Source: Cyanophora paradoxa CCMP329
Taxonomy: Eukaryota; Plantae; Glaucophyta
Length of the DNA stretch: 64,000 nucleotides
Direction of reading: 5' to 3'
Assembly: GCA_004431415.1 (NCBI GenBank)
Contig: QPMI01000005.1
Span: forward strand, 1,178,001-1,242,000
The notes beneath the pieces are model-generated. The model was given only the letters and a program-made list of their open reading frames with translations. It did not search any database and had not been told where the DNA came from. Both the position numbers and the translations under genes were made by a program. Of the stretch, positions 36,070 through 48,722 are shown in pieces; within the stretch, counting starts at the first letter, position 1; each line of letters begins with the position of its first letter.

Positions 36070-37922
36070 ATGGGCCGACAGCGGCCTGCCAAGCGTGCGC
36101 GTGCGGAAAATCCTTCGGGCTCGGTTAGCTCGGCGAGCGGCAGCACTAACCACTTCATGCGGCTGCCCGATGAGCTGGTCCAGCGCATTTTCAGCGAGCT
36201 GGAAGCGACGGAGGCGTTCGAGGAGTGCCGGCTGTGGGCGGTGGACAGGCGGTTCCGCCAGCTCGTGCGCGAAGTGCACTGGCAGCAGCTCCGGGTCGAG
36301 TCCAGCGTGCACGTGAACGCAGTCCAGAAGGAGCGTGTAAGAGTGCACAGACAGCGGTTACGCCGAATCGCGGCTCGCGTAGAGAGCGGGGCGATGCGGG
36401 GCTGCAAGAGACTCGTCGTTGGTACCTTGGATGCTGGTGAATTCGAAGATCTTGCGATGACAGGTGTGCACACCGCAATTTCCGACCGCACGCGCATGCG
36501 CACTTGGCTTATAGAACTAGTCGCGCAGAAATGCTGTCGGCACTGTCAGCGGCGCCCGCCCCGCTGGAGCATATCTCCTTCTGCTGCTGCCTTCCATCCA
36601 GTTTCCTGAAGGCATTCCACTCCGCTCCTCTCCAGTCGCTCCATCTGGAGGGGGCAGCGTGCTCCGAATTCGTCGCGGCCGCCGTCCCGGGCCGCCTCCC
36701 GTACCTTCGGGAGCTTTACCTCGGCACGAAAGATCGCCTGGTCTCTCTTGCTCGAGCGGTGCGTTCGCGAAGCAGATACAGCGGGGCGCTGGCTCTGCCG
36801 CTCGCCTCTGACTCCGGATCCGCGGTCAGCTGCAGTCGAAGCTGATGCACATCTGGCCGGGACTGAAGAAACTCTCGTGCGGGGTGCGGGACGGCGCTGC
36901 GCTTCGAGCGCTCGCGGGGCTGCCTCTGGACGAGCTGCGGGTAGAAGTCAGCCCACGGCCCTCCAACAGCTTCGTCTTCAGAGTAGAAGTCGCGAGGGGC
37001 GCCCTCGACGAGGCCATCGAATCGCTAAACGCCGACTGCGTGCGGGCGCTTCACCTGCCCCCCCGCTCCGAGGTGCTCGGGCCCAGCGGCCTCGCCGCTA
37101 TCATCCGCTTCCGTCACATCGAGGAGCTGACCGTCACGGTCCGCCCGGCCCGGCCCTCCCGATCCAGACCGAGACTCTGACGTCGAATCGCCTTTCGCCA
37201 GGTCGACCACACGTCCAGCGGTGTGCTCGCGGGCCTGGGCGCCCTGCAGAAGCTGCGCTCCCTGTCGCTCTGGCTGGACGTGCGCTCTCCGCCGCGCCCA
37301 CGCCGCAGCCCTCGTAGCCTTCCTCTAACACGTCCGTCCCGCAGGCCTCTGCCGCGCCCAAGGGCGCCGCCATCCTGCTGCAGGCCGCGTCGGATGGAGT
37401 GGAAGCGTCCCAGCGGCTCGAGTCCATGACCCTGCGCATCTACTCCACTGAAGAATCGCGGCGGTCGAGGCAGCCGCGAGTGCCGCTGGACCCCCCCAGC
37501 CTGGCCTCCCTGGTCCGCGTCTCCCGGCCGTACCTTGACGAGCTATCCATCGAGGACGGCCCGCCTTCGTTCGACGTCCTGTCGGTCCGCGCGCCCGCGC
37601 CCGCGTCCGCGGCCGCCCGTCCCGCGGCTGACCGAGCTTGCAGGAGATCGCGCGCCCCGGCCCGAAGCTCGAGAGCGTGCACCTCGACTACGAGCTACCA
37701 GAGCCCGAGGACGCAGACTCCGGGGTACAAGAGATCAGCGCCCTGGAGGGGCTGCTGGAGCTGTCCGACGACCGGCACCCCGACCTGGAGATCCGCGTCG
37801 ACGTGAGCCTCGCGTTCTGCGACGCGCAGACTCGGGAGAACCTGTCTGTCCTCCGCAACCAGTTGCAGCTCGAAGGTGACAATCTCCCCATCGCCATCGA
37901 ATTCAGCGAGCGGGACTGGTAA
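36070..37922 (+). CDS. F-box/LRR-like protein
   Basis: F-box HFMRLPDELVQRIFSEL...LWAVDRRFRQLV. LRR-like units include LQSLHLEG, LPYLRELYLG, WPGLKKLS, LQKLRSLSL and PKLESVHL. Stop follows IEFSERDW. Confidence 0.8.
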
Positions 37923-38495
37923 CCTGGTGACCGGGATCTGGCGATATGTCTTTATGAACTGAATGCGCATGCGCATGCCGCGGGGCGGGCGCGCGCGCGC
38001 GCTCTTCGAATTCGAATTCGAAGCTTAACTTAGTAAGTCGCGGCCGTATACGTATACGTAGAGGATCGATATCTAGATCTGGACTCGAATTTCGAAGCCA
38101 GGCCAGCTGCATGCGCAGGTACCGGGCCGGTTGCAGGCTTGCACCGGCAGCTCCAGCTTGCAATTGTCCGCGCAAAGCGTTAAGCCGCCGCCCCGGCGCG
38201 CGGCGCCGCCGCGCCGGCGCCTCGAGCTCGAGCTCACGCAATATTTCTCCCAGGCTCGTGCAATTCCGAGTCGCCGAGTCGATACTAGTACTGAGTCGCA
38301 CAGATTCTTTGTTGTGTTCAGGGCCGGGGTGCAACCGTACCGGCCGGCGGCTGCTCGCGAGGGGGGTACACGTTAGCAAAGACACGCGCTGCAAACTTCC
38401 GATCTCCGTTCGAATAGTGCCAGAACCTCGCCGCGAGGAGGCCTTAGCAGCCTGAGGGCGGCTGAAGGCGTCCCTTGGGACGCAGCGGCGGCAGG

Positions 38496-41400
38496 ATGGA
38501 CGCCGACCTTCTGCTGTACGAGCTTCTCGAGGCGGGAGGGGCTCGGCTGCCTGGGTTCGTCCAGCTAGTGATCGTGCTTGATCCGATAGAAGAAGATCGT
38601 GAGAGTTAACCTGCCACGCCCAGGTTCGCTTACGCGGAGTCTTGGAGCCGGCATGGCCCAGCGACCGATTTCACAGCCACTGGGGCTAGCGTCATGGCAG
38701 GAAGGATCAACAAGCAGGCAGCTGAGGAGTTCCGAGCCGCCACGGCGCTGGTGGCTTTGAAAGCCGGGCAGGACGTGGTGAGGTGCTGGGACTACTGCAC
38801 CGAGTGGATCATCGATGTCTCCCTTCTTCCCAATACTATGTTCTATCGGTCTGCTGAGGCGCGGAAAGTCGGACTGCGAACGGCGGTCGCCGTTCCGCTC
38901 ACGATTCTCGGGTGCGTGCTGGCTTGGCCTTCGACAGGTCGCTATTGCCTCATCAACTGCGTGCCGCAGAATGGATGTTCACGCAGTTCTGGTGTACTAC
39001 ATGGACTTGTGCGCCTAGCTCTGAGCTTATCTGACTTGGCCTCACTGACCACACTTTGCCGTTCCGGCCGCAGCGTGCGAGAGCCGTGCGGAGAGGCGGT
39101 CACGGACCTCCATCTTTGTATTGCAGCTGCAGCCGCAAGCTCGCGGATAGCGTCCAGCGGCGTGCACATCCCTAGCCTGCCGCCAGCCGGCCCGGACGCT
39201 CTAGCGGGAGTTCTGTCGCTCACCGTGTTCTCCCGGCCGTGCGTCACCGCTTTGATTCGGCTTAGCTGCGGGCGTTTCCCTGAGTGCTGCGCTCCAGGCC
39301 CGAGTTCAGAAGCGAGGCCGACGTCCGGCTGGTTGCTGAGCACCTCCGCACCGTTCCCGCGATGCGCAAGTACGAGAGGCACCTTGAGGACCTCGCGCGC
39401 GTGTCTACAATAGCCCAGACGAGGCCGGGCGATCTGAGTGCGCCGCCCGCGCCCAGCCGCATGCTCTGCGCCCTCCGACCGGCGTCCGTGCCCGCCAGTT
39501 TTCGAGGAGGGCACCGCCGGCACCGCCGCCTATCTAGTGATCCTGGGATCCGTACGGGTGCGCTGCGCGTTCCCCGGGGGCACGCACTTCGGTTTCCGCG
39601 CCGGCCGCCGCCGACCCCCGCGCCAGTTGACGACCGAGGCGGGCCCCGTGTCCCTGCTCGGCCCCGGCGCCGTCATCGGAGAGAGCGCCTTGCTACAGAC
39701 GCCCGCGCTCCGGTGAGGGCAGGCGGGCGGGCGCCGAGGGGTCCTGGGGCGCGTCGCGCCGACGCTCCGCGCCCGCAGGACGGGCCGCGCGGTGTGCGCG
39801 GAGGCGAGCGCTCTGCTGGTCATCAACCTGTCGTTCGTGCCGCACTTGCGGCGGCCGAACCCGCCGGCGCCGCCGCCGGCGCCGATGTCGGGCTGCAACT
39901 CGCCGGCCATGCCCCTCCCGTACGGCCTCGCCCACCGAGCCGCGAGCAACGCCGCCGCGCGCGCCCGCGGCAACAGCGTCGACCCGGGCAGCGAGGACGG
40001 GGACCGGCTGCCGAACGGCATGCCCCCGCCGCCGCCGTCCCCCATCACCAGCCCCGCCACGACCCTCTACACCACCGCGGACGGCCGCACGCTCGCCGAG
40101 GCGCTCCCCGGAGTCTTCGGCGCGTCGCCCGATGAAGTTTCCGAGTACAGCCGGCGCTGGTCCATGCCGGCCGGCAGCAGCAAGATCCTGGCCGCAGCGC
40201 AGCAGGCGGCGGCGGCCGCGGCCGCCGAGGCCGCAGCCGCCGCGCTCAAGGCGGCGTACCTTTCGGGATCGAAGCGGCACACGCGGCCGCCGTCGATGAC
40301 CGAGATGACGGTGCAGGCTGTGCCCCCCGGCGACCCGGCCGAGCCGCACTCGCACCGGCGGCGCCTCACCTGCCACCTCCCCGTCCTCTCCCTCCCGTCC
40401 CCGACCGTCCCGACTACCGGCGAGGACCGGGCGCGCGCCCTCGCCGCCGCCCTCTCCGGCCAGGGCCTGATGCAGCGCGGCGGCGGCGGCGGCGGCGTCG
40501 GCAGCGGCGAGAGCTCCCCGACGCACGCCCAGGCCGGGGCGTCCTCCTCCTCCACTTCCTCCCACCTCCTGCCCCTGCTCCGCGGCGGCCGCGTGCCCCC
40601 CCCGGTTGCGGTCCCCAACTTCGCGGTGCAGCCGCCCTCGGTCATCTTCGACGGGGCGGGCCCCTCGGCGCCCCCGCCCCGCACCACGTCGCCCCTCACT
40701 TCCGCCTCTTCCCCATCCTCTGTGGACGGCGGCGCTGGGGAGGGAGCCGCGGGGATGGCGAGCCTGACGCCGCCGCTGGGTTCTGGATCCTTCGGGCGGC
40801 GGGGCCAGCTGCCGGGCGCGCAGGGCTCGTTCCACAGCTTCCGGTCCAACTCGCTGGCCCCGTCGGACGTCTCGAGCGCCTGCGACGACTCGCACACTGG
40901 CGGCGAGGACGAGGACGGCGACGACGAGGAGGACGGGGGCCAGGGCGAGGGGTCCCACCCCACGGGCAGCCCCGAGCTCCACCCGGGCCTCGCCTCCGAG
41001 CGGCGCGGCTCCATCAGCAACTTCGGCGGGCTGGCCCTCGGGGGCGGGGGCGGGGGCGGGGCGGACGGGGCGGTCGCCCCCTCCTCGAGCTGGCCCCCGC
41101 CCGGCGCGCGCTTCGTCGGGCGCGGCAAGATCTCCTACCCCGGCCAGAAGCCACGCCAGCTCCGCCAGAAGGACATCAGCTACGAGATGCTCTCCGGTTC
41201 GAATCCCCGACGATCCCGTTTTGCCCGCTCGCCTCTCTGCTTCCCTCCCGCTCCCTGACCGGGCCGGCCCCTTCGTCGCTCAGCGTGGTTCCACGTGCCT
41301 CTCAAGGTGGCTGCCCAGCACATCGGGCTATCCACGACCACCATCAAGAAGATCTGTCGTAAGATGGGCATAAAGAACTGGTGCGATCCACTCGTTTCCT

Positions 41401-41967
41401 TCGTCTGTGTTGTGTGTCCCACTCTAGCGTTGACTCTTCTGCGTGTCGCAGGCCGTTCCGGCAGCTCGTCTTCTCGACCGGCGACAGCAGCCGGGCCGCC
41501 GCCGTCGCGGCGGCCGCCGCGCGCGGGCGGGCGGAGGCGAGGGCCCTTTGCGAGGGCCGCTCGCGTTCGCCTTCGAACTCCCCGTCGCCCTCGCCGCCGC
41601 CGGCGGCTGCGGGCGGCCCCGGCCGGCCTTCAACGCCGAGCTGGGCCCCGGCGGCGTCGTCCGCGTGACGGCGCCAGCGCCCGGGATCCTGACGCGCCGC
41701 CCTCGAGGGGAGAGGTCCTCAACGCGAGCCCGCCCCTGAACGTGCCCGTACCCAGGCGGGAGGCGCCGCACCTTCAGCAGCACCTCCCGACGTCCCCCGA
41801 GTGCGACGAGGAGGCCGACGATGACGACGCGCCGGCGCCCCCGCCCCAGGGCCGCCCGGCGGCGGCGGCCGCCGCCGCCGCGCAGGCGCAGGCTGCGATG
41901 GCAGCGCGACTGGAGGCGGCGCGGGTCGCCGCGGCGCAGGCATCGGCGGCGCAGGCTGCCGCTGCAC

Positions 41968-41998
<31 letters not shown>

Positions 41999-42404
41999 CG
42001 GCGGCGGCGGGCCCCCGCCCATCCTGGCGCCATCCAGTCTCGAATTCGCGCTGGCGGGACTCCCGGGCCCCGACGGCGGCGGCGTGACGCCCCGGACCCT
42101 CGCGGCCGTCGGCGGCCTCGGCCCGCTCAACGCGGCGGGCGCCGTCGTCGGCGGGGCCGACATGGACCAGCTGCTCTTCGGCCTGTCGGACCCGTACGTC
42201 GACCTTGCCGACGTCCTCAGCGCTACGTTCGCGGCTGCTCCCGCCCTCGGCGCCACGCCGCGCGCCTCCCCGCTCCCCGGCTCCGCCCCCTTCCCCTTCC
42301 CCCTCTCCTACCCCGTGACGCCCTCCGGCGGGACGCCCCGTGACGGGGCCGCCCAGCCATCCCTCCCCACCCCCTCGGGTTTCACGGAAACCATGTGGGA
42401 CTGA
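38496..42404 (+). CDS. RWP-RK transcription factor with N-terminal NLP/NIN-type GAF-like domain and cyclic-nucleotide-binding domain
   Basis: GAF-like region FAYAESW...GQDVVRCWDYCTEWIIDVSLLPNTMFYRSAEARKVGLRTAVAVPL...VLVYY. cNMP domain FEEGTAGTAAYLVILGSVRV...LLGPGAVIGESALLQTPALR|TGRAVCAEASALLVI (39500-39830). RWP-RK domain DISYEMLS|AWFHVPLKVAAQHIGLSTTTIKKICRKMGIKNW|PFRQ (41172-41465). A short final intron at ~41665-41708 joins to the stop at 42404. Confidence 0.85.
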
Positions 42405-43067
42405 CCTCTTTCCTTCCTTCCTATGTCAACGTACCCCCGTAGTGAGACGCGCAGGCCATTACAGAGCAGTACCCCTCGGAAGAGACGTTCAGCCCCCCCT
42501 CTCCCCCTCCTTTGAGCTGTTTTTATTGTGTATTTCCCTCCCACTTACCGCTCCGCGTAGTAGCCTTTTCATGGGATCCGCAGAGCACGCCGGACAGAGC
42601 TGTGGCACGACGAGGCTTGGCTTGCCGCGCCGCGCCCTGTCCTTTAGTTCGGATCCGTTCGCCCTTTTCCCAGCTTCGCTCTTTAGACCTTGTTGGCTGC
42701 TGCCAATGTTTTGACAATTGCAGATAGGCTCTATTTTCAACACGCATGTACACGTCTGATAGGTAAAGGCTCGTTATTCTAGCGAGTGGAAGGAAGATTC
42801 ATTGAGGAATACGTATAGCAAATGAATGAACGCCAAGCCTTCAAGCTTGTATTCGCGCGACCCGGCGGCGCCGCATGCCGGCCGGGCGCCGCAGCTCGAG
42901 CTCCCTTCAGCTGCATGCGCATGTGCACAGTGCGCCGCCGCAGTGCCGCAGTGCATGCACGCGCGTCGCAGCGGCCGTTGCCAAGTTGTCACGCCGTGAT
43001 GCGTATTTACATACGACGTACCGCGCTGTGCAGCTGATGTAACAGACTACACACACCGTGACGGTAG

Positions 43068-44221
43068 CTAGTCCTTGTGGCGGTCCTTCTTCTTCTTCTT
43101 TTTGGAGTGCCTCCGCTCGTCGTCGCTCCCGCTGTCGCTCTCGCTCTCGCTGCTGGAGGACGAGGAGGACGAGGAGCTGCCGCTCTTCCGCTTCTTCTTC
43201 GACGACGACGACTCGCCCTTCTCCTTCTCCTCCTTTCTCCTCTTTCTCTTCTCCTCCTTCCTCCGCTTCTTCTCCTCCTGCGGACGATGGCGGCTTCTTA
43301 GCAGAGACGCCCGGGCCCCGCCCGAGTCGAAGGCGGACCTTCTTTAACCGCTTCTTCTCTTTCTTCTTGGCCTTCTTCTCCTTCCGTTCCCGCTCCTCCA
43401 TCTCCAGCAGCGACTGGAGCTGCTTCTTGCTGCGGCGCGGATCAAATCTCAACGAGGGCCGCGGGGCGCGCGAATTGCTCTCCGGCGGACTCACCGCTCC
43501 TCCACGGCCTCCTTTACCTTGTCGTTCTGCACATAGCCAGCCATGGGGTCGCCGGCTGCCTTCAGCAGATCCTCAGCCTTGCCGCCGGACAGGAACAGTG
43601 GGCAGTCCTTGTCGCCCGTGCGGTGCCCATACGCCTTGCATCTGCAGATTCAACATGTTCAGACCCGATTCAGACGCGAGCGCGTCGCGCGGACCTCCAG
43701 CACTGCATGACCTTGACCTCCACCCCGAGCGGCATCCACAACCCCTTCGTCGGCGCCTGCACCCGCGCAGTTCAGCCGCTATTGCCGCCAGAAAGAAGCA
43801 AAGCGAAGAGGCAGGCTCGCCTTCGCGAGGAACTCCCGGGCCTTCGCGTTCTCGGGCCTGGCGGAGCGAGCGTGAGAGGGGAGCTCGAGCTCGGTCGCGC
43901 GCCGCGTCGCACAGGTCCGGGATGGCATCCTCAGGTCGTGGCTCCTTCTTCTCCACGACAGGCGGAGGTTCATAGAGCCAGCCGGTCTTGTTGGCGCGCG
44001 CTGCGACAGGCTTGAGCTCGCAAGCGAAAGCAATGATGCACGCTATCGAGCCGACGCATTTCGCTTACGTAGCCGATCGCACCTTCCAAAACCTTGCTGT
44101 CCTCGGGGTTCCAAGAGCCCTTGTCGCTGCGGTCCTTGTCTGAGTCGGCGCCGGCGCATCCGCTCGCTCGTCCATCGTCGCGCCTTTCACTCTGCGCATC
44201 GCTTGACCTGTCGCCTCCCAT
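43068..44221 (-). CDS. RP9: RP9 / PAP-1 homolog (CCHC zinc knuckle, splicing-associated)
   Basis: Spliced YEPPP...PEDAIPDL|PENAKAREFLAK|APTKGLWMPLGVEVKVMQCWR|CKAYGHRTGDKDCP matches the conserved RP9 core, followed by a Lys/Ser-rich tail. Confidence 0.9.
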
Positions 44222-44399: not shown

Positions 44400-47300
44400 A
44401 TGGGCGCCGGAGCTGCACGGGTGCGATGCGCATGGCTTCTAGTGCGCTTTCATTGCTGACCCACGCAGCCGGCGTTCCAGCCGCTCGTGCCGCCCGCCAA
44501 GGAACCGCCAAGGGCAGCCGACGAGCTTAGCGGCGCGGGCCGTGCGCAAGAATCCAGTAGGGCAGGCCGCAGCGCAGGCCAAGAAGGGGCCCCGCCGCAG
44601 CGTAGGCCGCGCAGCCTATGGTGCTGCGGCCGCCCCCCGGCTGTGCGCCCCGTGGAGTCCCTTCCTCCCACACCGCTGCATCCGGTCAAGCTGCCAGCTT
44701 GGAAGGCCAATGACGAGGCCCACGCCCTGGAGCTGCCCTCCGAAGTCCTCATGCTGGAGAGCGAGCCCGGGAAGAACGCAGCCGCGGCCGCCCCCGCAGG
44801 ATCGGAGAGCAAGCCAGAAGCGCCGCCGTCGCCAACAAAGTGCGCGGCTCTGCTCGACGCGGGCGCCGCACCCCGGGCGTTGGGTTGACTGCGGCCGCCG
44901 CGGCGCAGCCCTCCCGCAGTCACGCCGCGCCCCGCCGAGGCGCACAGCCCGCTCCAGAAGGACCTAATGGAGGCCAGGAGAGAGGCTGCCATCGAGAAAG
45001 CCGTCGCTGACTTCGTTCTCGAATACGTTACCGACCGGGCCGCGACGTTACCGATCTCGGACGTGCTGGAAGCTGTGCGCCGGGGCCCGGGACGCGTGCC
45101 GCAGTGCTGCGCTCTAAAGCTAATGCGCTGCTGTATTCAGGCGTGCAAGCAGTGCTGCGCGGCCCTGGGGGCCGACTTCGTCTTTCTGGCCGCGGACCAG
45201 GCCATTCTGGAGACGGATCGGGACAACAGGAACCTCCCCGTCGGCCCTGAGTGCGCCCCTCAAGTAAACTTAAAGACTTGAGTTAAGAATTTAACTGGAT
45301 TTTACCTGAGAAGTTTAAGCTTTCGGCCGCGCACGGCCCACCCGTCTCCGAATGAACGGCTCACTGACTGGATGGCCGCGGCGGCGCAGGATGAAGGTTC
45401 TGGGCTCGCACCGGAGGCGCGCGGAGGGCGCGCCCTCCCCGGAGAAGCAGGCGCCCGTCTCGCCACACACATTCAACGCATCGCGCGAGGGAGACCTGGC
45501 ACACGCCGTCGTCTCCGCCCGGCCCGGCCCGCTCGCCCTCCCCGACCCCGCAGCCCTTCGCCTCGAGTGGCCTCCGTTCCTGGGCTCCCAGGCCTCGGCC
45601 GCCGGCGCCGCGCTCGTACCCACCTCCGCGGCCGGCGGCTCGGCGTGGGGGGTACTCGTCGCGTGCTGGCGGGCCGCGCCCCAGCCCGAGGAACTCAGCT
45701 TCGCCGCCGGCGCCGCCGCGCGCTTCGCGGGCGCAGTACAGTCCGCCGTCGAGCACATCCGATCCGTCCAGGCGCGTATCCGTTTGAAGTCTTCCTCCCC
45801 CCCCCCCAGTATACCCTTTCTAACGTGGTACCCCTGCAGTCCCTGAAGGAGGGGGAGTCCCTCCTCCGGTTCGAGAAGGCGATCGCCGACCGGATCGTTA
45901 ACAGCGTACTCCCCCGCCACGTCGTCACGGAGATGCTCTGCAACCACCGCCCGGTCGCCCGGGTACGCCAATCGCTTTTTTCTCGCCCGTTTCTTTCCGT
46001 TCCCGGATCCGAACCCGCCCCCCCCCCCCCCCCCCCCTCCCTTTCAGGTCTACTCCGGCGTCTCGATCCTGTTTGCGGACATCTGCGGTAACCCCCCCCC
46101 GTTCTACCCGTACCCCGGGAACCCGAACGCCGTACCCCCCGCAGGCTTCACGGCGATGGCGGGCCAGATGGGCGCACCCGAGCTTGTGCAGTTCCTGAAC
46201 GACATGTGCGTACCCCCCTCGTACGGTTCCGCCCCCTTTCTCTCGATCTGATTCGTGCGATCCTGCAGCTTCTCCGCGTTTGACGCAATCGCCCGCTCGA
46301 TCGGCGTCGAGAAGATCAAGTGCGGCCGTACCCCCCTTTCGCCTTGTCCTCCCCCCCCTGACATCTTTCTTCCCCTCGCAGGACCATCGGAGACTGCTAC
46401 AGTGCGCGGCAGCGCCCTTCTCCTCCTCCTTCTCCTCCTCCTCCCCCCGGCCGCCGCGGGCTGAGCCGGGTGCCTTCGCTCGCACGCAGTGTGCGCGGCG
46501 GGGATGGAGGAGGGGGAAGGATCCGCCGCCGCCAACGCGAACCACGCCGCCAACGCAATCGAGATGGGCCTCGGTGGGTACCCCTCTCGCCCATTCAGTT
46601 CTATTCGGTACCCCTCCTGACCGGCCGGCTCCAGGCATGCTTCACGCCGTCGAGCTTTTCAACGCGCACTTCGGCACCACTCTTCAGATGCGAATCGGTA
46701 CCCCCTCTTCCGCACTTCCCCCTACTTTTTTTGGACGCCTTGCAAACGCGGTACCCCCAGGCATCCACTCGGGGAGCGTGGTGGCGGGCGTGATCGGCCA
46801 GACGAAGCTCGCGTACGACCTGTGGTACCCCCCCTTTTCCCGCCCCAACCCCCCTCCCTGCCCCGTACCCCCGCCAAATCTCCCTACCCCTCTCTACAGG
46901 GGGGATACCGTGAACCTGGCGTCGCGAATGGAATCAACGGGGGAGCCGGGCCGCGTCCACGTCAGCGACGCGACCTACCGTGCGCCGCCGAGACTCATAT
47001 CAGATCGCATCTGATCTGATCTGATCTGATATGATATGATATGATCCTATCCGATCCGATCCGATCTGAGCGCCGCGCGCAGGGCTGGCGGAGGGGAAGT
47101 ACCGGTGGGATGCGCCGCGGGAGACGCTGGTCAAGGGCAAGGAGGGGCCCCTGCAGACGTACCTCCTCCTCGGTGCGTGCGGGCGGGCGGCCGGGCGGGC
47201 GCGCAGAGGCGCCCGCGAGCGTCCAGGAGGAGAAGAAGAAGTGCCGGCCCCGCCATCTTGCGGGCGGCCGGGCGGGCGCGCGGGCGAGGCGGGCCGGCGA

Positions 47301-48199
47301 GGCGGGCTGACGAGGCGGGGGCGCCGCCAGCGCCCTAAGCGCGCGCCCCGCCCCGCCATCTTTAACGGGGCGCGCGCGCAGGGCGCGGGGGGGGAGACCA
47401 TCGGGACACGGCCGCCGACTACGGGGACCTCATCATGCGCGCCCTCCGCCGCTCCTCCGACGGCGTCCTCGGTTCGTTCGTTCGTTCTAAGCTTCGTAGC
47501 TTACTTAGCGTGAGGATAGATAAATCTAGTCCTTGGTTCGTTCTAAGCTTCCTAGCTAGCTTAGCTTGGGGATAAACTTGGACGAGCTTCTAAGCAGGTT
47601 GGCTTGGATGGACACTAGTACCTAGTAAACTTGGATAAACCGCGTCGTTCGTTCGTGCCGCGCTGGGCGCCTCCTCAGCATCAAACTAGTGAGCTCTGAA
47701 TTTGGCGAATCAAATACGTAAGAGGCGGCCGCGGAGCTTTCTGGTTGCGCCGTCCTCCCGCTTCTCCATCCTTCCCTCCCCACCCACCCCTCTGTAGCTT
47801 GTAGCCCCGCTCCCGCTTCGCCCCTGCCTGACTTCGCCCTCGTTCGCTTCGTTCGCAGAGATGATCCGGCGCTCGAGCACCATCAGCGCCGGGGGGGGGA
47901 AGGGGACCGCGTCGCGCCCCGCGAGCCGCCCGCGCATCCTGCCCATCCGCGGGGGGCCCCCCGGCAGCCGGACCTTCCAGGTCAAGCCGCCCTCGCAGCC
48001 GTCTGGCTTCGAGTCCTCCAAGTCCATGCCGGCGACGCGCGACGCCTCCCCCGCCGGCTCACCTGAGCGGGGTCCGTCCCCCGTGTCCCCCTCGTCCGGC
48101 TTCTTCCCCCGGGCGGGGAGCGCCCCCGCCCTGGCCGATGTGGCCGAGGAAGAGGTTCGCGGCGCCGGCGCCGGCGCCGCGGGGGTTGCGGGGGCTTAG
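44400..48199 (+). CDS. Class III nucleotide cyclase with adenylyl-type residues and an upstream GAF-like domain; no TM helix seen
   Basis: Catalytic motifs are VSILFADIC|GFT, EKIK|TIGDCY, MRI|[22 protein letters not shown]|[14 protein letters not shown] and VKGK. Lys in KIKTIG and Asp in YDLWG indicate ATP specificity. The GAF-like region is [11 protein letters not shown]...ALVPT...WGVLVACWR, followed by the linker [14 protein letters not shown]. The N-terminus is MGAGAAR|P. Confidence 0.9.
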
Positions 48200-48722
48200 T
48201 GGCGGGCTGGCGCCCAGCCCTTGCTCTTTTCTTTGAAGAGAGGTATTTGCTTCTCCTTTCTTTATGTATAGCGTCGTTGCTTAGTGGCAACTTATTTGTT
48301 TACGTAGTCGCCATGCCCCTTTCTCTGCTTCACAGTATCCAGCTGCAGTACTTCGGCCACTACTCCAGGGGCGTGGGCTGCCATAGCCAGTCTCATGATC
48401 ATATATAATCCGATGATCTAGACGGCGCGCATTCCCGCCGGGCCCGGCCGGGTAGCTTAGGCTTCCGTATAGTATGCGCACCGGCCCCAGCCGGCCCGGG
48501 GGGCCAGTTGCGCAAGTTGGGCCGGGGCGGATCAAATTCAATCTCGAATGGGAACAACCGGGAGTCGAAGCACTGGCGAGTTTCCACGAGCGCACTGCAT
48601 GCGGCACATTGAAGCGGTTCAACGGTTACAGTATAGCTAGCTATAGCGCGAGCGTCACACCCAACGTACCGAGCAGCTGGCGTCCTCGCAGCGGTCGCAG
48701 CGATCGCGCTTTGACCTTTGAA

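Follow-up and report, generated by a model that had tools for sequence, protein, structure and literature searches.

To our knowledge, the effectors of eukaryotes that carry a cyclic-nucleotide-binding (CNB) domain comprise kinases, exchange factors, channels, and membrane proteins, and it is by way of kinases that cAMP acts on eukaryotic transcription. In bacteria, CRP signals via a C-helix dimer into an adjoining helix-turn-helix (PMC2275311; PMC2246266). Land-plant AtNLP7 senses nitrate through residues H404, L406, and Y436 (PMC13523203), and ligand binding to the N-terminal sensor of NLP7 causes a conformational change that relieves autoinhibition and alters nuclear retention. For the control of algal nitrogen genes by cyclic nucleotides, a direct interaction with NIT2 has been proposed, not demonstrated (PMC4620153). 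Here, we describe a glaucophyte gene that joins a GAF domain, a CNB domain, and an RWP-RK DNA-binding domain in one protein.

Transcript and domain architecture of g15646

The locus at 38496-42404 of the window corresponds to Cyanophora paradoxa gene g15646 (EukProt tig00000042_g15646.t1). The window, the entire stretch of 64,000 nucleotides analyzed, is eukaryotic DNA that is rich in GC and has short introns. A phmmer search with its exon 2 identified a 100% identical protein of 1068 aa, hereafter P0001, which is that same EukProt entry. Exons were derived from splice signals and then tested against contigs of the public runs X1, X5, and X15 (table 1). X1 and X5 come from two studies and their RNA type is guessed rather than recorded; X15 is DNA-like. 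Contigs of X1 and X5 lack each of the nine GT-AG introns (58-87 nt); X15 retains them. One X1 contig of 3023 nt corresponds to 38373-41960 with no other letters and carries GAF, CNB, and RWP-RK in a single open frame. g15646 is a real, expressed gene with its three domains on one transcript, as the earlier note had anticipated, and a chimeric gene model is ruled out by this contig, whose frame is open throughout. An in-frame stop lies upstream of the start ATG at 38496, and the transcribed leader has no earlier ATG.

Table 1. Features of g15646, in coordinates of the window.
Feature	Position	Strand	Description
5' untranslated leader	38373-38495	+	contigs start at 38373-38387; upstream ATG absent
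Coding region	38496-42404	+	ten exons; 1101 aa with the two missing C bases restored
Exons 1-5	38496-38554, 38624-38911, 38970-39008, 39074-39238, 39298-39437	+	
Exons 6-10	39499-39557, 39627-39712, 39779-41196, 41284-41380, 41452-42404	+	
Single divergent GAF	38502-39155	+	aa ~3-156, exons 1-4; of the bacterial GAF_2 / NLP-NIT2 type; lacks the His and Tyr of the nitrate pocket
CNB domain	39305-39848	+	aa 187-302, exons 5-8; has N3A helices and a beta barrel, with Gly235, Gly238, and Tyr242; hinge short and containing Pro300; C-helix missing
Phosphate-binding cassette	39678-39782	+	Gly268-Glu269 to Arg279-Thr280; interrupted by intron 7
Low-complexity linker	39849-41162	+	aa 303-740; 438 residues; 55% Ala/Gly/Pro/Ser
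RRx[ST] kinase motifs in linker	40152, 40359, 41001	+	
RWP-RK DNA-binding domain	41172-41470	+	aa 744-790, interrupted by introns 8 and 9; NWPFRQ core at 41376-41464
C-terminus	41471-42404	+	low-complexity, Ala/Pro-rich, no PB1; acidic-hydrophobic stretch near end
3' untranslated region	42405-42843	+	contig ends at ~42843

The single phase-consistent spliced model proposed in the earlier note stands in its coordinates and in describing one transcript, but its frame is broken in the window. Exon 10 is short of one C after 41616 and of another after 41699. Because X1, X5, and X15 all carry both bases, the losses at 41616-41700 are assembly errors. With both restored, the frame of exon 10 continues as far as the stop at 42404. 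The public model is 33 aa short and uses a tenth intron (41665-41755) that is ruled out by reads and is an artefact of the two deletions. Pfam and homologue searches were done with single exons and with P0001, which equals the spliced model over its first ~838 residues and includes all three domains.

The order of GAF, CNB, and RWP-RK is confirmed by Pfam and by profile comparison. P0001 scores 41 bits against Pfam cNMP_binding (cut-off 27.5) and 58.7 bits against RWP-RK (gathering score 29.3), and exon 9 alone scores 41.1 bits against the latter. A PB1 domain, reported absent by the earlier note, has no Pfam match in the 3' exon pieces or in P0001. Near the end of the low-complexity C-terminus, the acidic-hydrophobic stretch may be an activation region. 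As read from sequence, the layout follows that of Chlamydomonas NIT2, but a cyclic-nucleotide domain has been added behind the GAF.

The pairing of cNMP and RWP-RK is visible in the database annotation of P0001. The literature that was searched, which comprised papers available without subscription, lacks a description of the pair. For oomycete RWP-RK proteins, one survey has Myb as the only extra domain and never mentions cNMP in its tables (PMC7399023). Homologue searches, which relied on shared words and length limits and so give a weak blank, yielded neither another protein that combines the two domains nor an orthologue of g15646. In the ESM Atlas, restricted to clusters of 50 or more, no cluster joins CNB and RWP-RK; clusters with CNB and GAF are bacterial and those with GAF_NLP and RWP-RK are chlorophyte. 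A metagenome scan yielded two RWP-RK loci (L002:1377-1502 and L001:577-702), both without CNB or GAF, and viral scans were blank. The L002 locus is in a 40 kb contig of 44% GC and has a short ORF with core RWPHRQ; it may be viral or protist DNA.

Several genes flank g15646. Directly upstream is an F-box-like gene (36070-37922, +) with leucine-rich stretches and a Pfam match at E 1.7e-4, below cut-off. Downstream, the product of a spliced gene (43060-43950, -) combines a CCHC zinc knuckle with a tail rich in Lys and Ser and may resemble RP9/PAP-1 splicing factors. Beyond it is a many-exon class III adenylyl cyclase (45840-48199, +), for which ten phase-consistent exons are predicted from splice phase across 45840-47172. 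This part contains all catalytic residues (both metal Asp, the ATP-specifying Lys and Asp, and the Asn/Arg pair), and no sensor domain was found in the part read. A gene module like that of Cya and CRP is unsupported, as another gene lies between g15646 and the cyclase, and their proximity is probably due to chance. The intergenic region 37923-38372 has 51 palindromic hexamers versus 8.3 in base shuffles. Similar runs are at 42860-42970 and 48400-48640, and such clusters may be typical of intergenic DNA in Cyanophora.

Cyclic-nucleotide-binding domain and its possible coupling to transcription

The CNB of P0001 has PKG I, Epac2, and Plasmodium PKG as its closest PDB sequence matches. An AlphaFold2 model, for which the mixed alignment was shallow (mean pLDDT 64; CNB block means 53-83), has its fold-search matches taken up by this domain, which aligns with CNB domains of PKG, PKA-R, and channels at Z up to 10.5 (rmsd ~3.4 over ~110 residues). 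In the model, N3A helices are at 190-201 and 204-218. Features that define a canonical CNB (N3A, the glycines of the beta2-3 loop, and the cassette) were taken from PMC2275311 and PMC2246266. The phosphate-binding cassette is intact, as first described: Gly268, Glu269, and Arg279 are kept, as are Gly235 and Gly238 of the beta2-3 loop. Thr280 follows the cassette Arg as in PKG, and the cassette is one residue longer than that of PKG. The helix that had been quoted before the cassette needs correction, because its LRSR is intron-4 sequence; the spliced protein there reads FSRP-PEFRSEADV. Ser259 presumably occupies the position of the selectivity Arg of PKG CNB-B. Since this position is Ser, little discrimination between cAMP and cGMP is expected and probably either would bind.

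The domain has no lid. Hinge B/C helices and an evident capping residue are absent from both sequence and model; strand 8 is followed by a short hinge with Pro300 and then polyproline. Reads agree over this stretch of exon 8, without differences. The base is capped in all known CNB structures, and stable binding needs the hinge in the cited model (PMC2275311; PMC2246266). Because the C-helix is absent, another element would have to supply the cap. In PKG I CNB-B, one helical turn and a loop cap the base. On these features, the CNB is a predicted cyclic-nucleotide pocket and direct gating by cAMP or cGMP is plausible.

We suggest, with a probability of roughly one half, that g15646 encodes a NIT2-like factor with a GAF-CNB sensor that is gated by cAMP/cGMP and released from autoinhibition upon binding. 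Either nucleotide would bind the CNB with modest affinity, with the base capped from outside the domain by the GAF, a partner subunit, or a short segment around Tyr327. Binding would shift the N3A/GAF surface and thereby release an inhibitory contact or change nuclear retention, which would free the RWP-RK domain, far along the chain, together with the putative activation region at the C-terminus. The GAF would more likely be a dimerization or regulatory scaffold than a nitrate pocket, and the RRx[ST] sites may add kinase input. Release of autoinhibition, the route of NLP7, is likelier than coupling of the CRP type because the C-helix is missing and 440 low-complexity residues separate the CNB from the DNA-binding domain.

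In favor of direct gating, we counted the single spliced transcript, cNMP_binding and RWP-RK scores above cut-off, matches to PKG, Epac, and PKA, canonical contacts, N3A, and the precedent of NLP7, whose N-terminal sensor activates it by changing conformation. Counted against it were the lack of a C-helix or evident cap, the Pro in the hinge, the one-residue insertion in the cassette, the low-complexity linker, through which the CNB is not rigidly connected to RWP-RK, the loss of Arg1 and Lys6 from the RWP-RK core, and the failure to retrieve an orthologue. A wider proposal is tentative and somewhat short of even odds: that glaucophytes have a family of one-component factors in which direct binding of cAMP/cGMP to the CNB controls DNA binding by RWP-RK or nuclear retention, bypassing PKA, on a NIT2/NLP scaffold. 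If true, a second messenger would control genes directly, and there would be a class of eukaryotic cyclic-nucleotide effectors that bypasses PKA. The soluble sensor of g15646, at ~345 residues, makes direct control testable.

The same lidless hinge is consistent with a CNB that is a ligand-poor structural or protein-interaction module, with control exerted by kinases through PKA-type motifs or by partner subunits, which might be paralogues that have a lid. Beyond the missing C-helix and the proline, this explanation draws on the three RRx[ST] motifs of the linker (0.31 expected, p=0.003 by shuffling; the motif is common to several kinase groups) and on the degeneracy of the GAF and RWP-RK core. 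However, the ribose-phosphate contacts and both loop glycines are all kept, whereas drift would usually erode them, and PKG I CNB-B binds with just one turn of C-helix. A ligand-poor CNB is the main rival reading and is less probable than direct gating.

GAF and RWP-RK domains

The earlier note described the N-terminal region as an NLP-type GAF. A GAF-like region is upheld by profile comparison, but Pfam GAF models, including GAF_NLP, have no direct match in P0001. Besides P0001 itself, the only phmmer match is P0002, a bacterial triple-GAF cyclase (E 3.5e-6) whose repeats match Pfam GAF_2 and GAF_NLP. Comparison by hhalign of a profile of 53 bacterial GAF repeats with aa 52-136 gave a probability of 95.9% (E 5.6e-9), and the same profile used as an HMM scored 30.3 bits, with 6.8 as the maximum over 2000 shuffles. 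By ESM features, the match is to GAF clusters (0.94), and the AlphaFold2 model has the strand and helix order of a GAF over aa 50-156, with low confidence in the first strands. Profile and sequence evidence thus point to a GAF that is real but divergent. Its loop is seven residues long, as in GAFs of plant NLPs, versus five in bacterial ones, and it has the R-x-x-E-A of NIT2 (both compared by eye with sequences in the supplement of PMC7399023).

P0002 is a bacterial adenylate/guanylate cyclase, and its repeats also match Pfam bHLH-MYC_N. Its GAF group may be a bacterial sister of the NLP/NIT2 sensor.

Input from a nitrogen ligand, which the earlier note had raised, is unsupported. By-eye mapping on AtNLP6 text places Val63, Leu65, and Phe93 at the equivalents of H404, L406, and Y436, and the G-x-x-G-R loop is degenerate (D-V-V-R). 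Sensing of nitrate by this GAF is unlikely because Val63 and Phe93 replace the His and Tyr and the loop is altered. g15646 has one GAF only, and a second repeat with a nitrate pocket is not present.

A GAF that binds a different small molecule beside the CNB, either a cyclic nucleotide or a carbon/nitrogen metabolite, would make g15646 a two-ligand factor. Matches of the related bacterial GAF profile include NifA-like Nlh1/Nlh2 and GAFs of phosphodiesterases, and the NIT2 GAF has been proposed to bind cGMP or 2-oxoglutarate (PMC4620153). The glycine loop of that GAF group (Gly61 and Gly64 are invariant) is nevertheless altered in g15646 and the first strands are poorly modelled, and we regard a second ligand of this kind as improbable. 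A dual sensor of nitrate and cyclic nucleotide, with an NLP7-like nitrate receptor, is very improbable: the NLP-type GAF with its plant-like loop spacing and the ties of the RWP-RK family to nitrogen favor it, but the His and Tyr positions are changed and the sole GAF resembles NIT2 and the first NLP repeat, not the nitrate-binding second repeat.

The variant core NWPFRQ is confirmed in the spliced model. Within the RWPxRK motif, Trp, Pro, and Arg are kept, whereas position 1 is Asn and position 6 is Gln. Positions 1 and 6 vary in oomycete proteins, and NIT2 likewise has Gln at position 6 (printed sequences in the supplement of PMC7399023). The domain is identical to NIT2, MID, and NLP7 at ~21 of 47 residues each, as counted by eye, which does not discriminate orthology. 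The altered core and a short helix behind it could mean that the protein no longer binds DNA alone and is a dominant-negative or a scaffold for other RWP-RK factors, yet its Pfam score is twice the cut-off and its substitutions are at the positions that vary elsewhere, making such a loss highly improbable.

Comparison with known systems

In its CNB, g15646 is closest to PKG, PKA-R, and Epac, which are the best matches in sequence and structure and share N3A, the beta2-3 loop, and the Arg-Thr cassette. Unlike these proteins, g15646 has a transcription-factor domain as its output and is missing the lid helix.

Like bacterial CRP/FNR, g15646 has cyclic-nucleotide-binding and DNA-binding domains in one chain. 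The analogy drawn in the earlier note fails on mechanism. In contrast to CRP/FNR, g15646 has the N3A of a cis-regulated CNB, lacks the C-helix that is the dimer and hinge element of CRP, and has RWP-RK instead of the CRP helix-turn-helix, with ~440 low-complexity residues between the domains. Its best CRP-type NCBIfam match is 15.9 bits (cut-off 300). Because CRP works through a C-helix dimer into the adjoining helix-turn-helix, rigid coupling of that type is excluded.

Land-plant AtNLP6/7 share with g15646 a GAF-type N-terminal sensor, the spacing of the GAF loop, and RWP-RK. They differ in that g15646 has no second GAF, no His or Tyr of the HLY pocket, and no PB1, and its CNB occupies the place of the second GAF. 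Chlamydomonas and Volvox NIT2 are alike in having one N-terminal GAF of the type of the first NLP repeat (R-x-x-E-A), a long low-complexity middle, and Gln at RWP-RK position 6; PB1 is not named for NIT2 in a review (PMC4620153). Unlike NIT2, g15646 has a CNB after the GAF, and by eye its DNA-binding domain resembles MID and NLP7 as much as it does NIT2. The product of g15646 is a NIT2-like RWP-RK factor with a CNB that is canonical in its core but lidless; it is neither an NLP nor CRP-like in mechanism. These comparisons suggest that the GAF-RWP-RK scaffold predates green plants and that different second sensors were added to it, a nitrate GAF in land plants and a CNB in glaucophytes.
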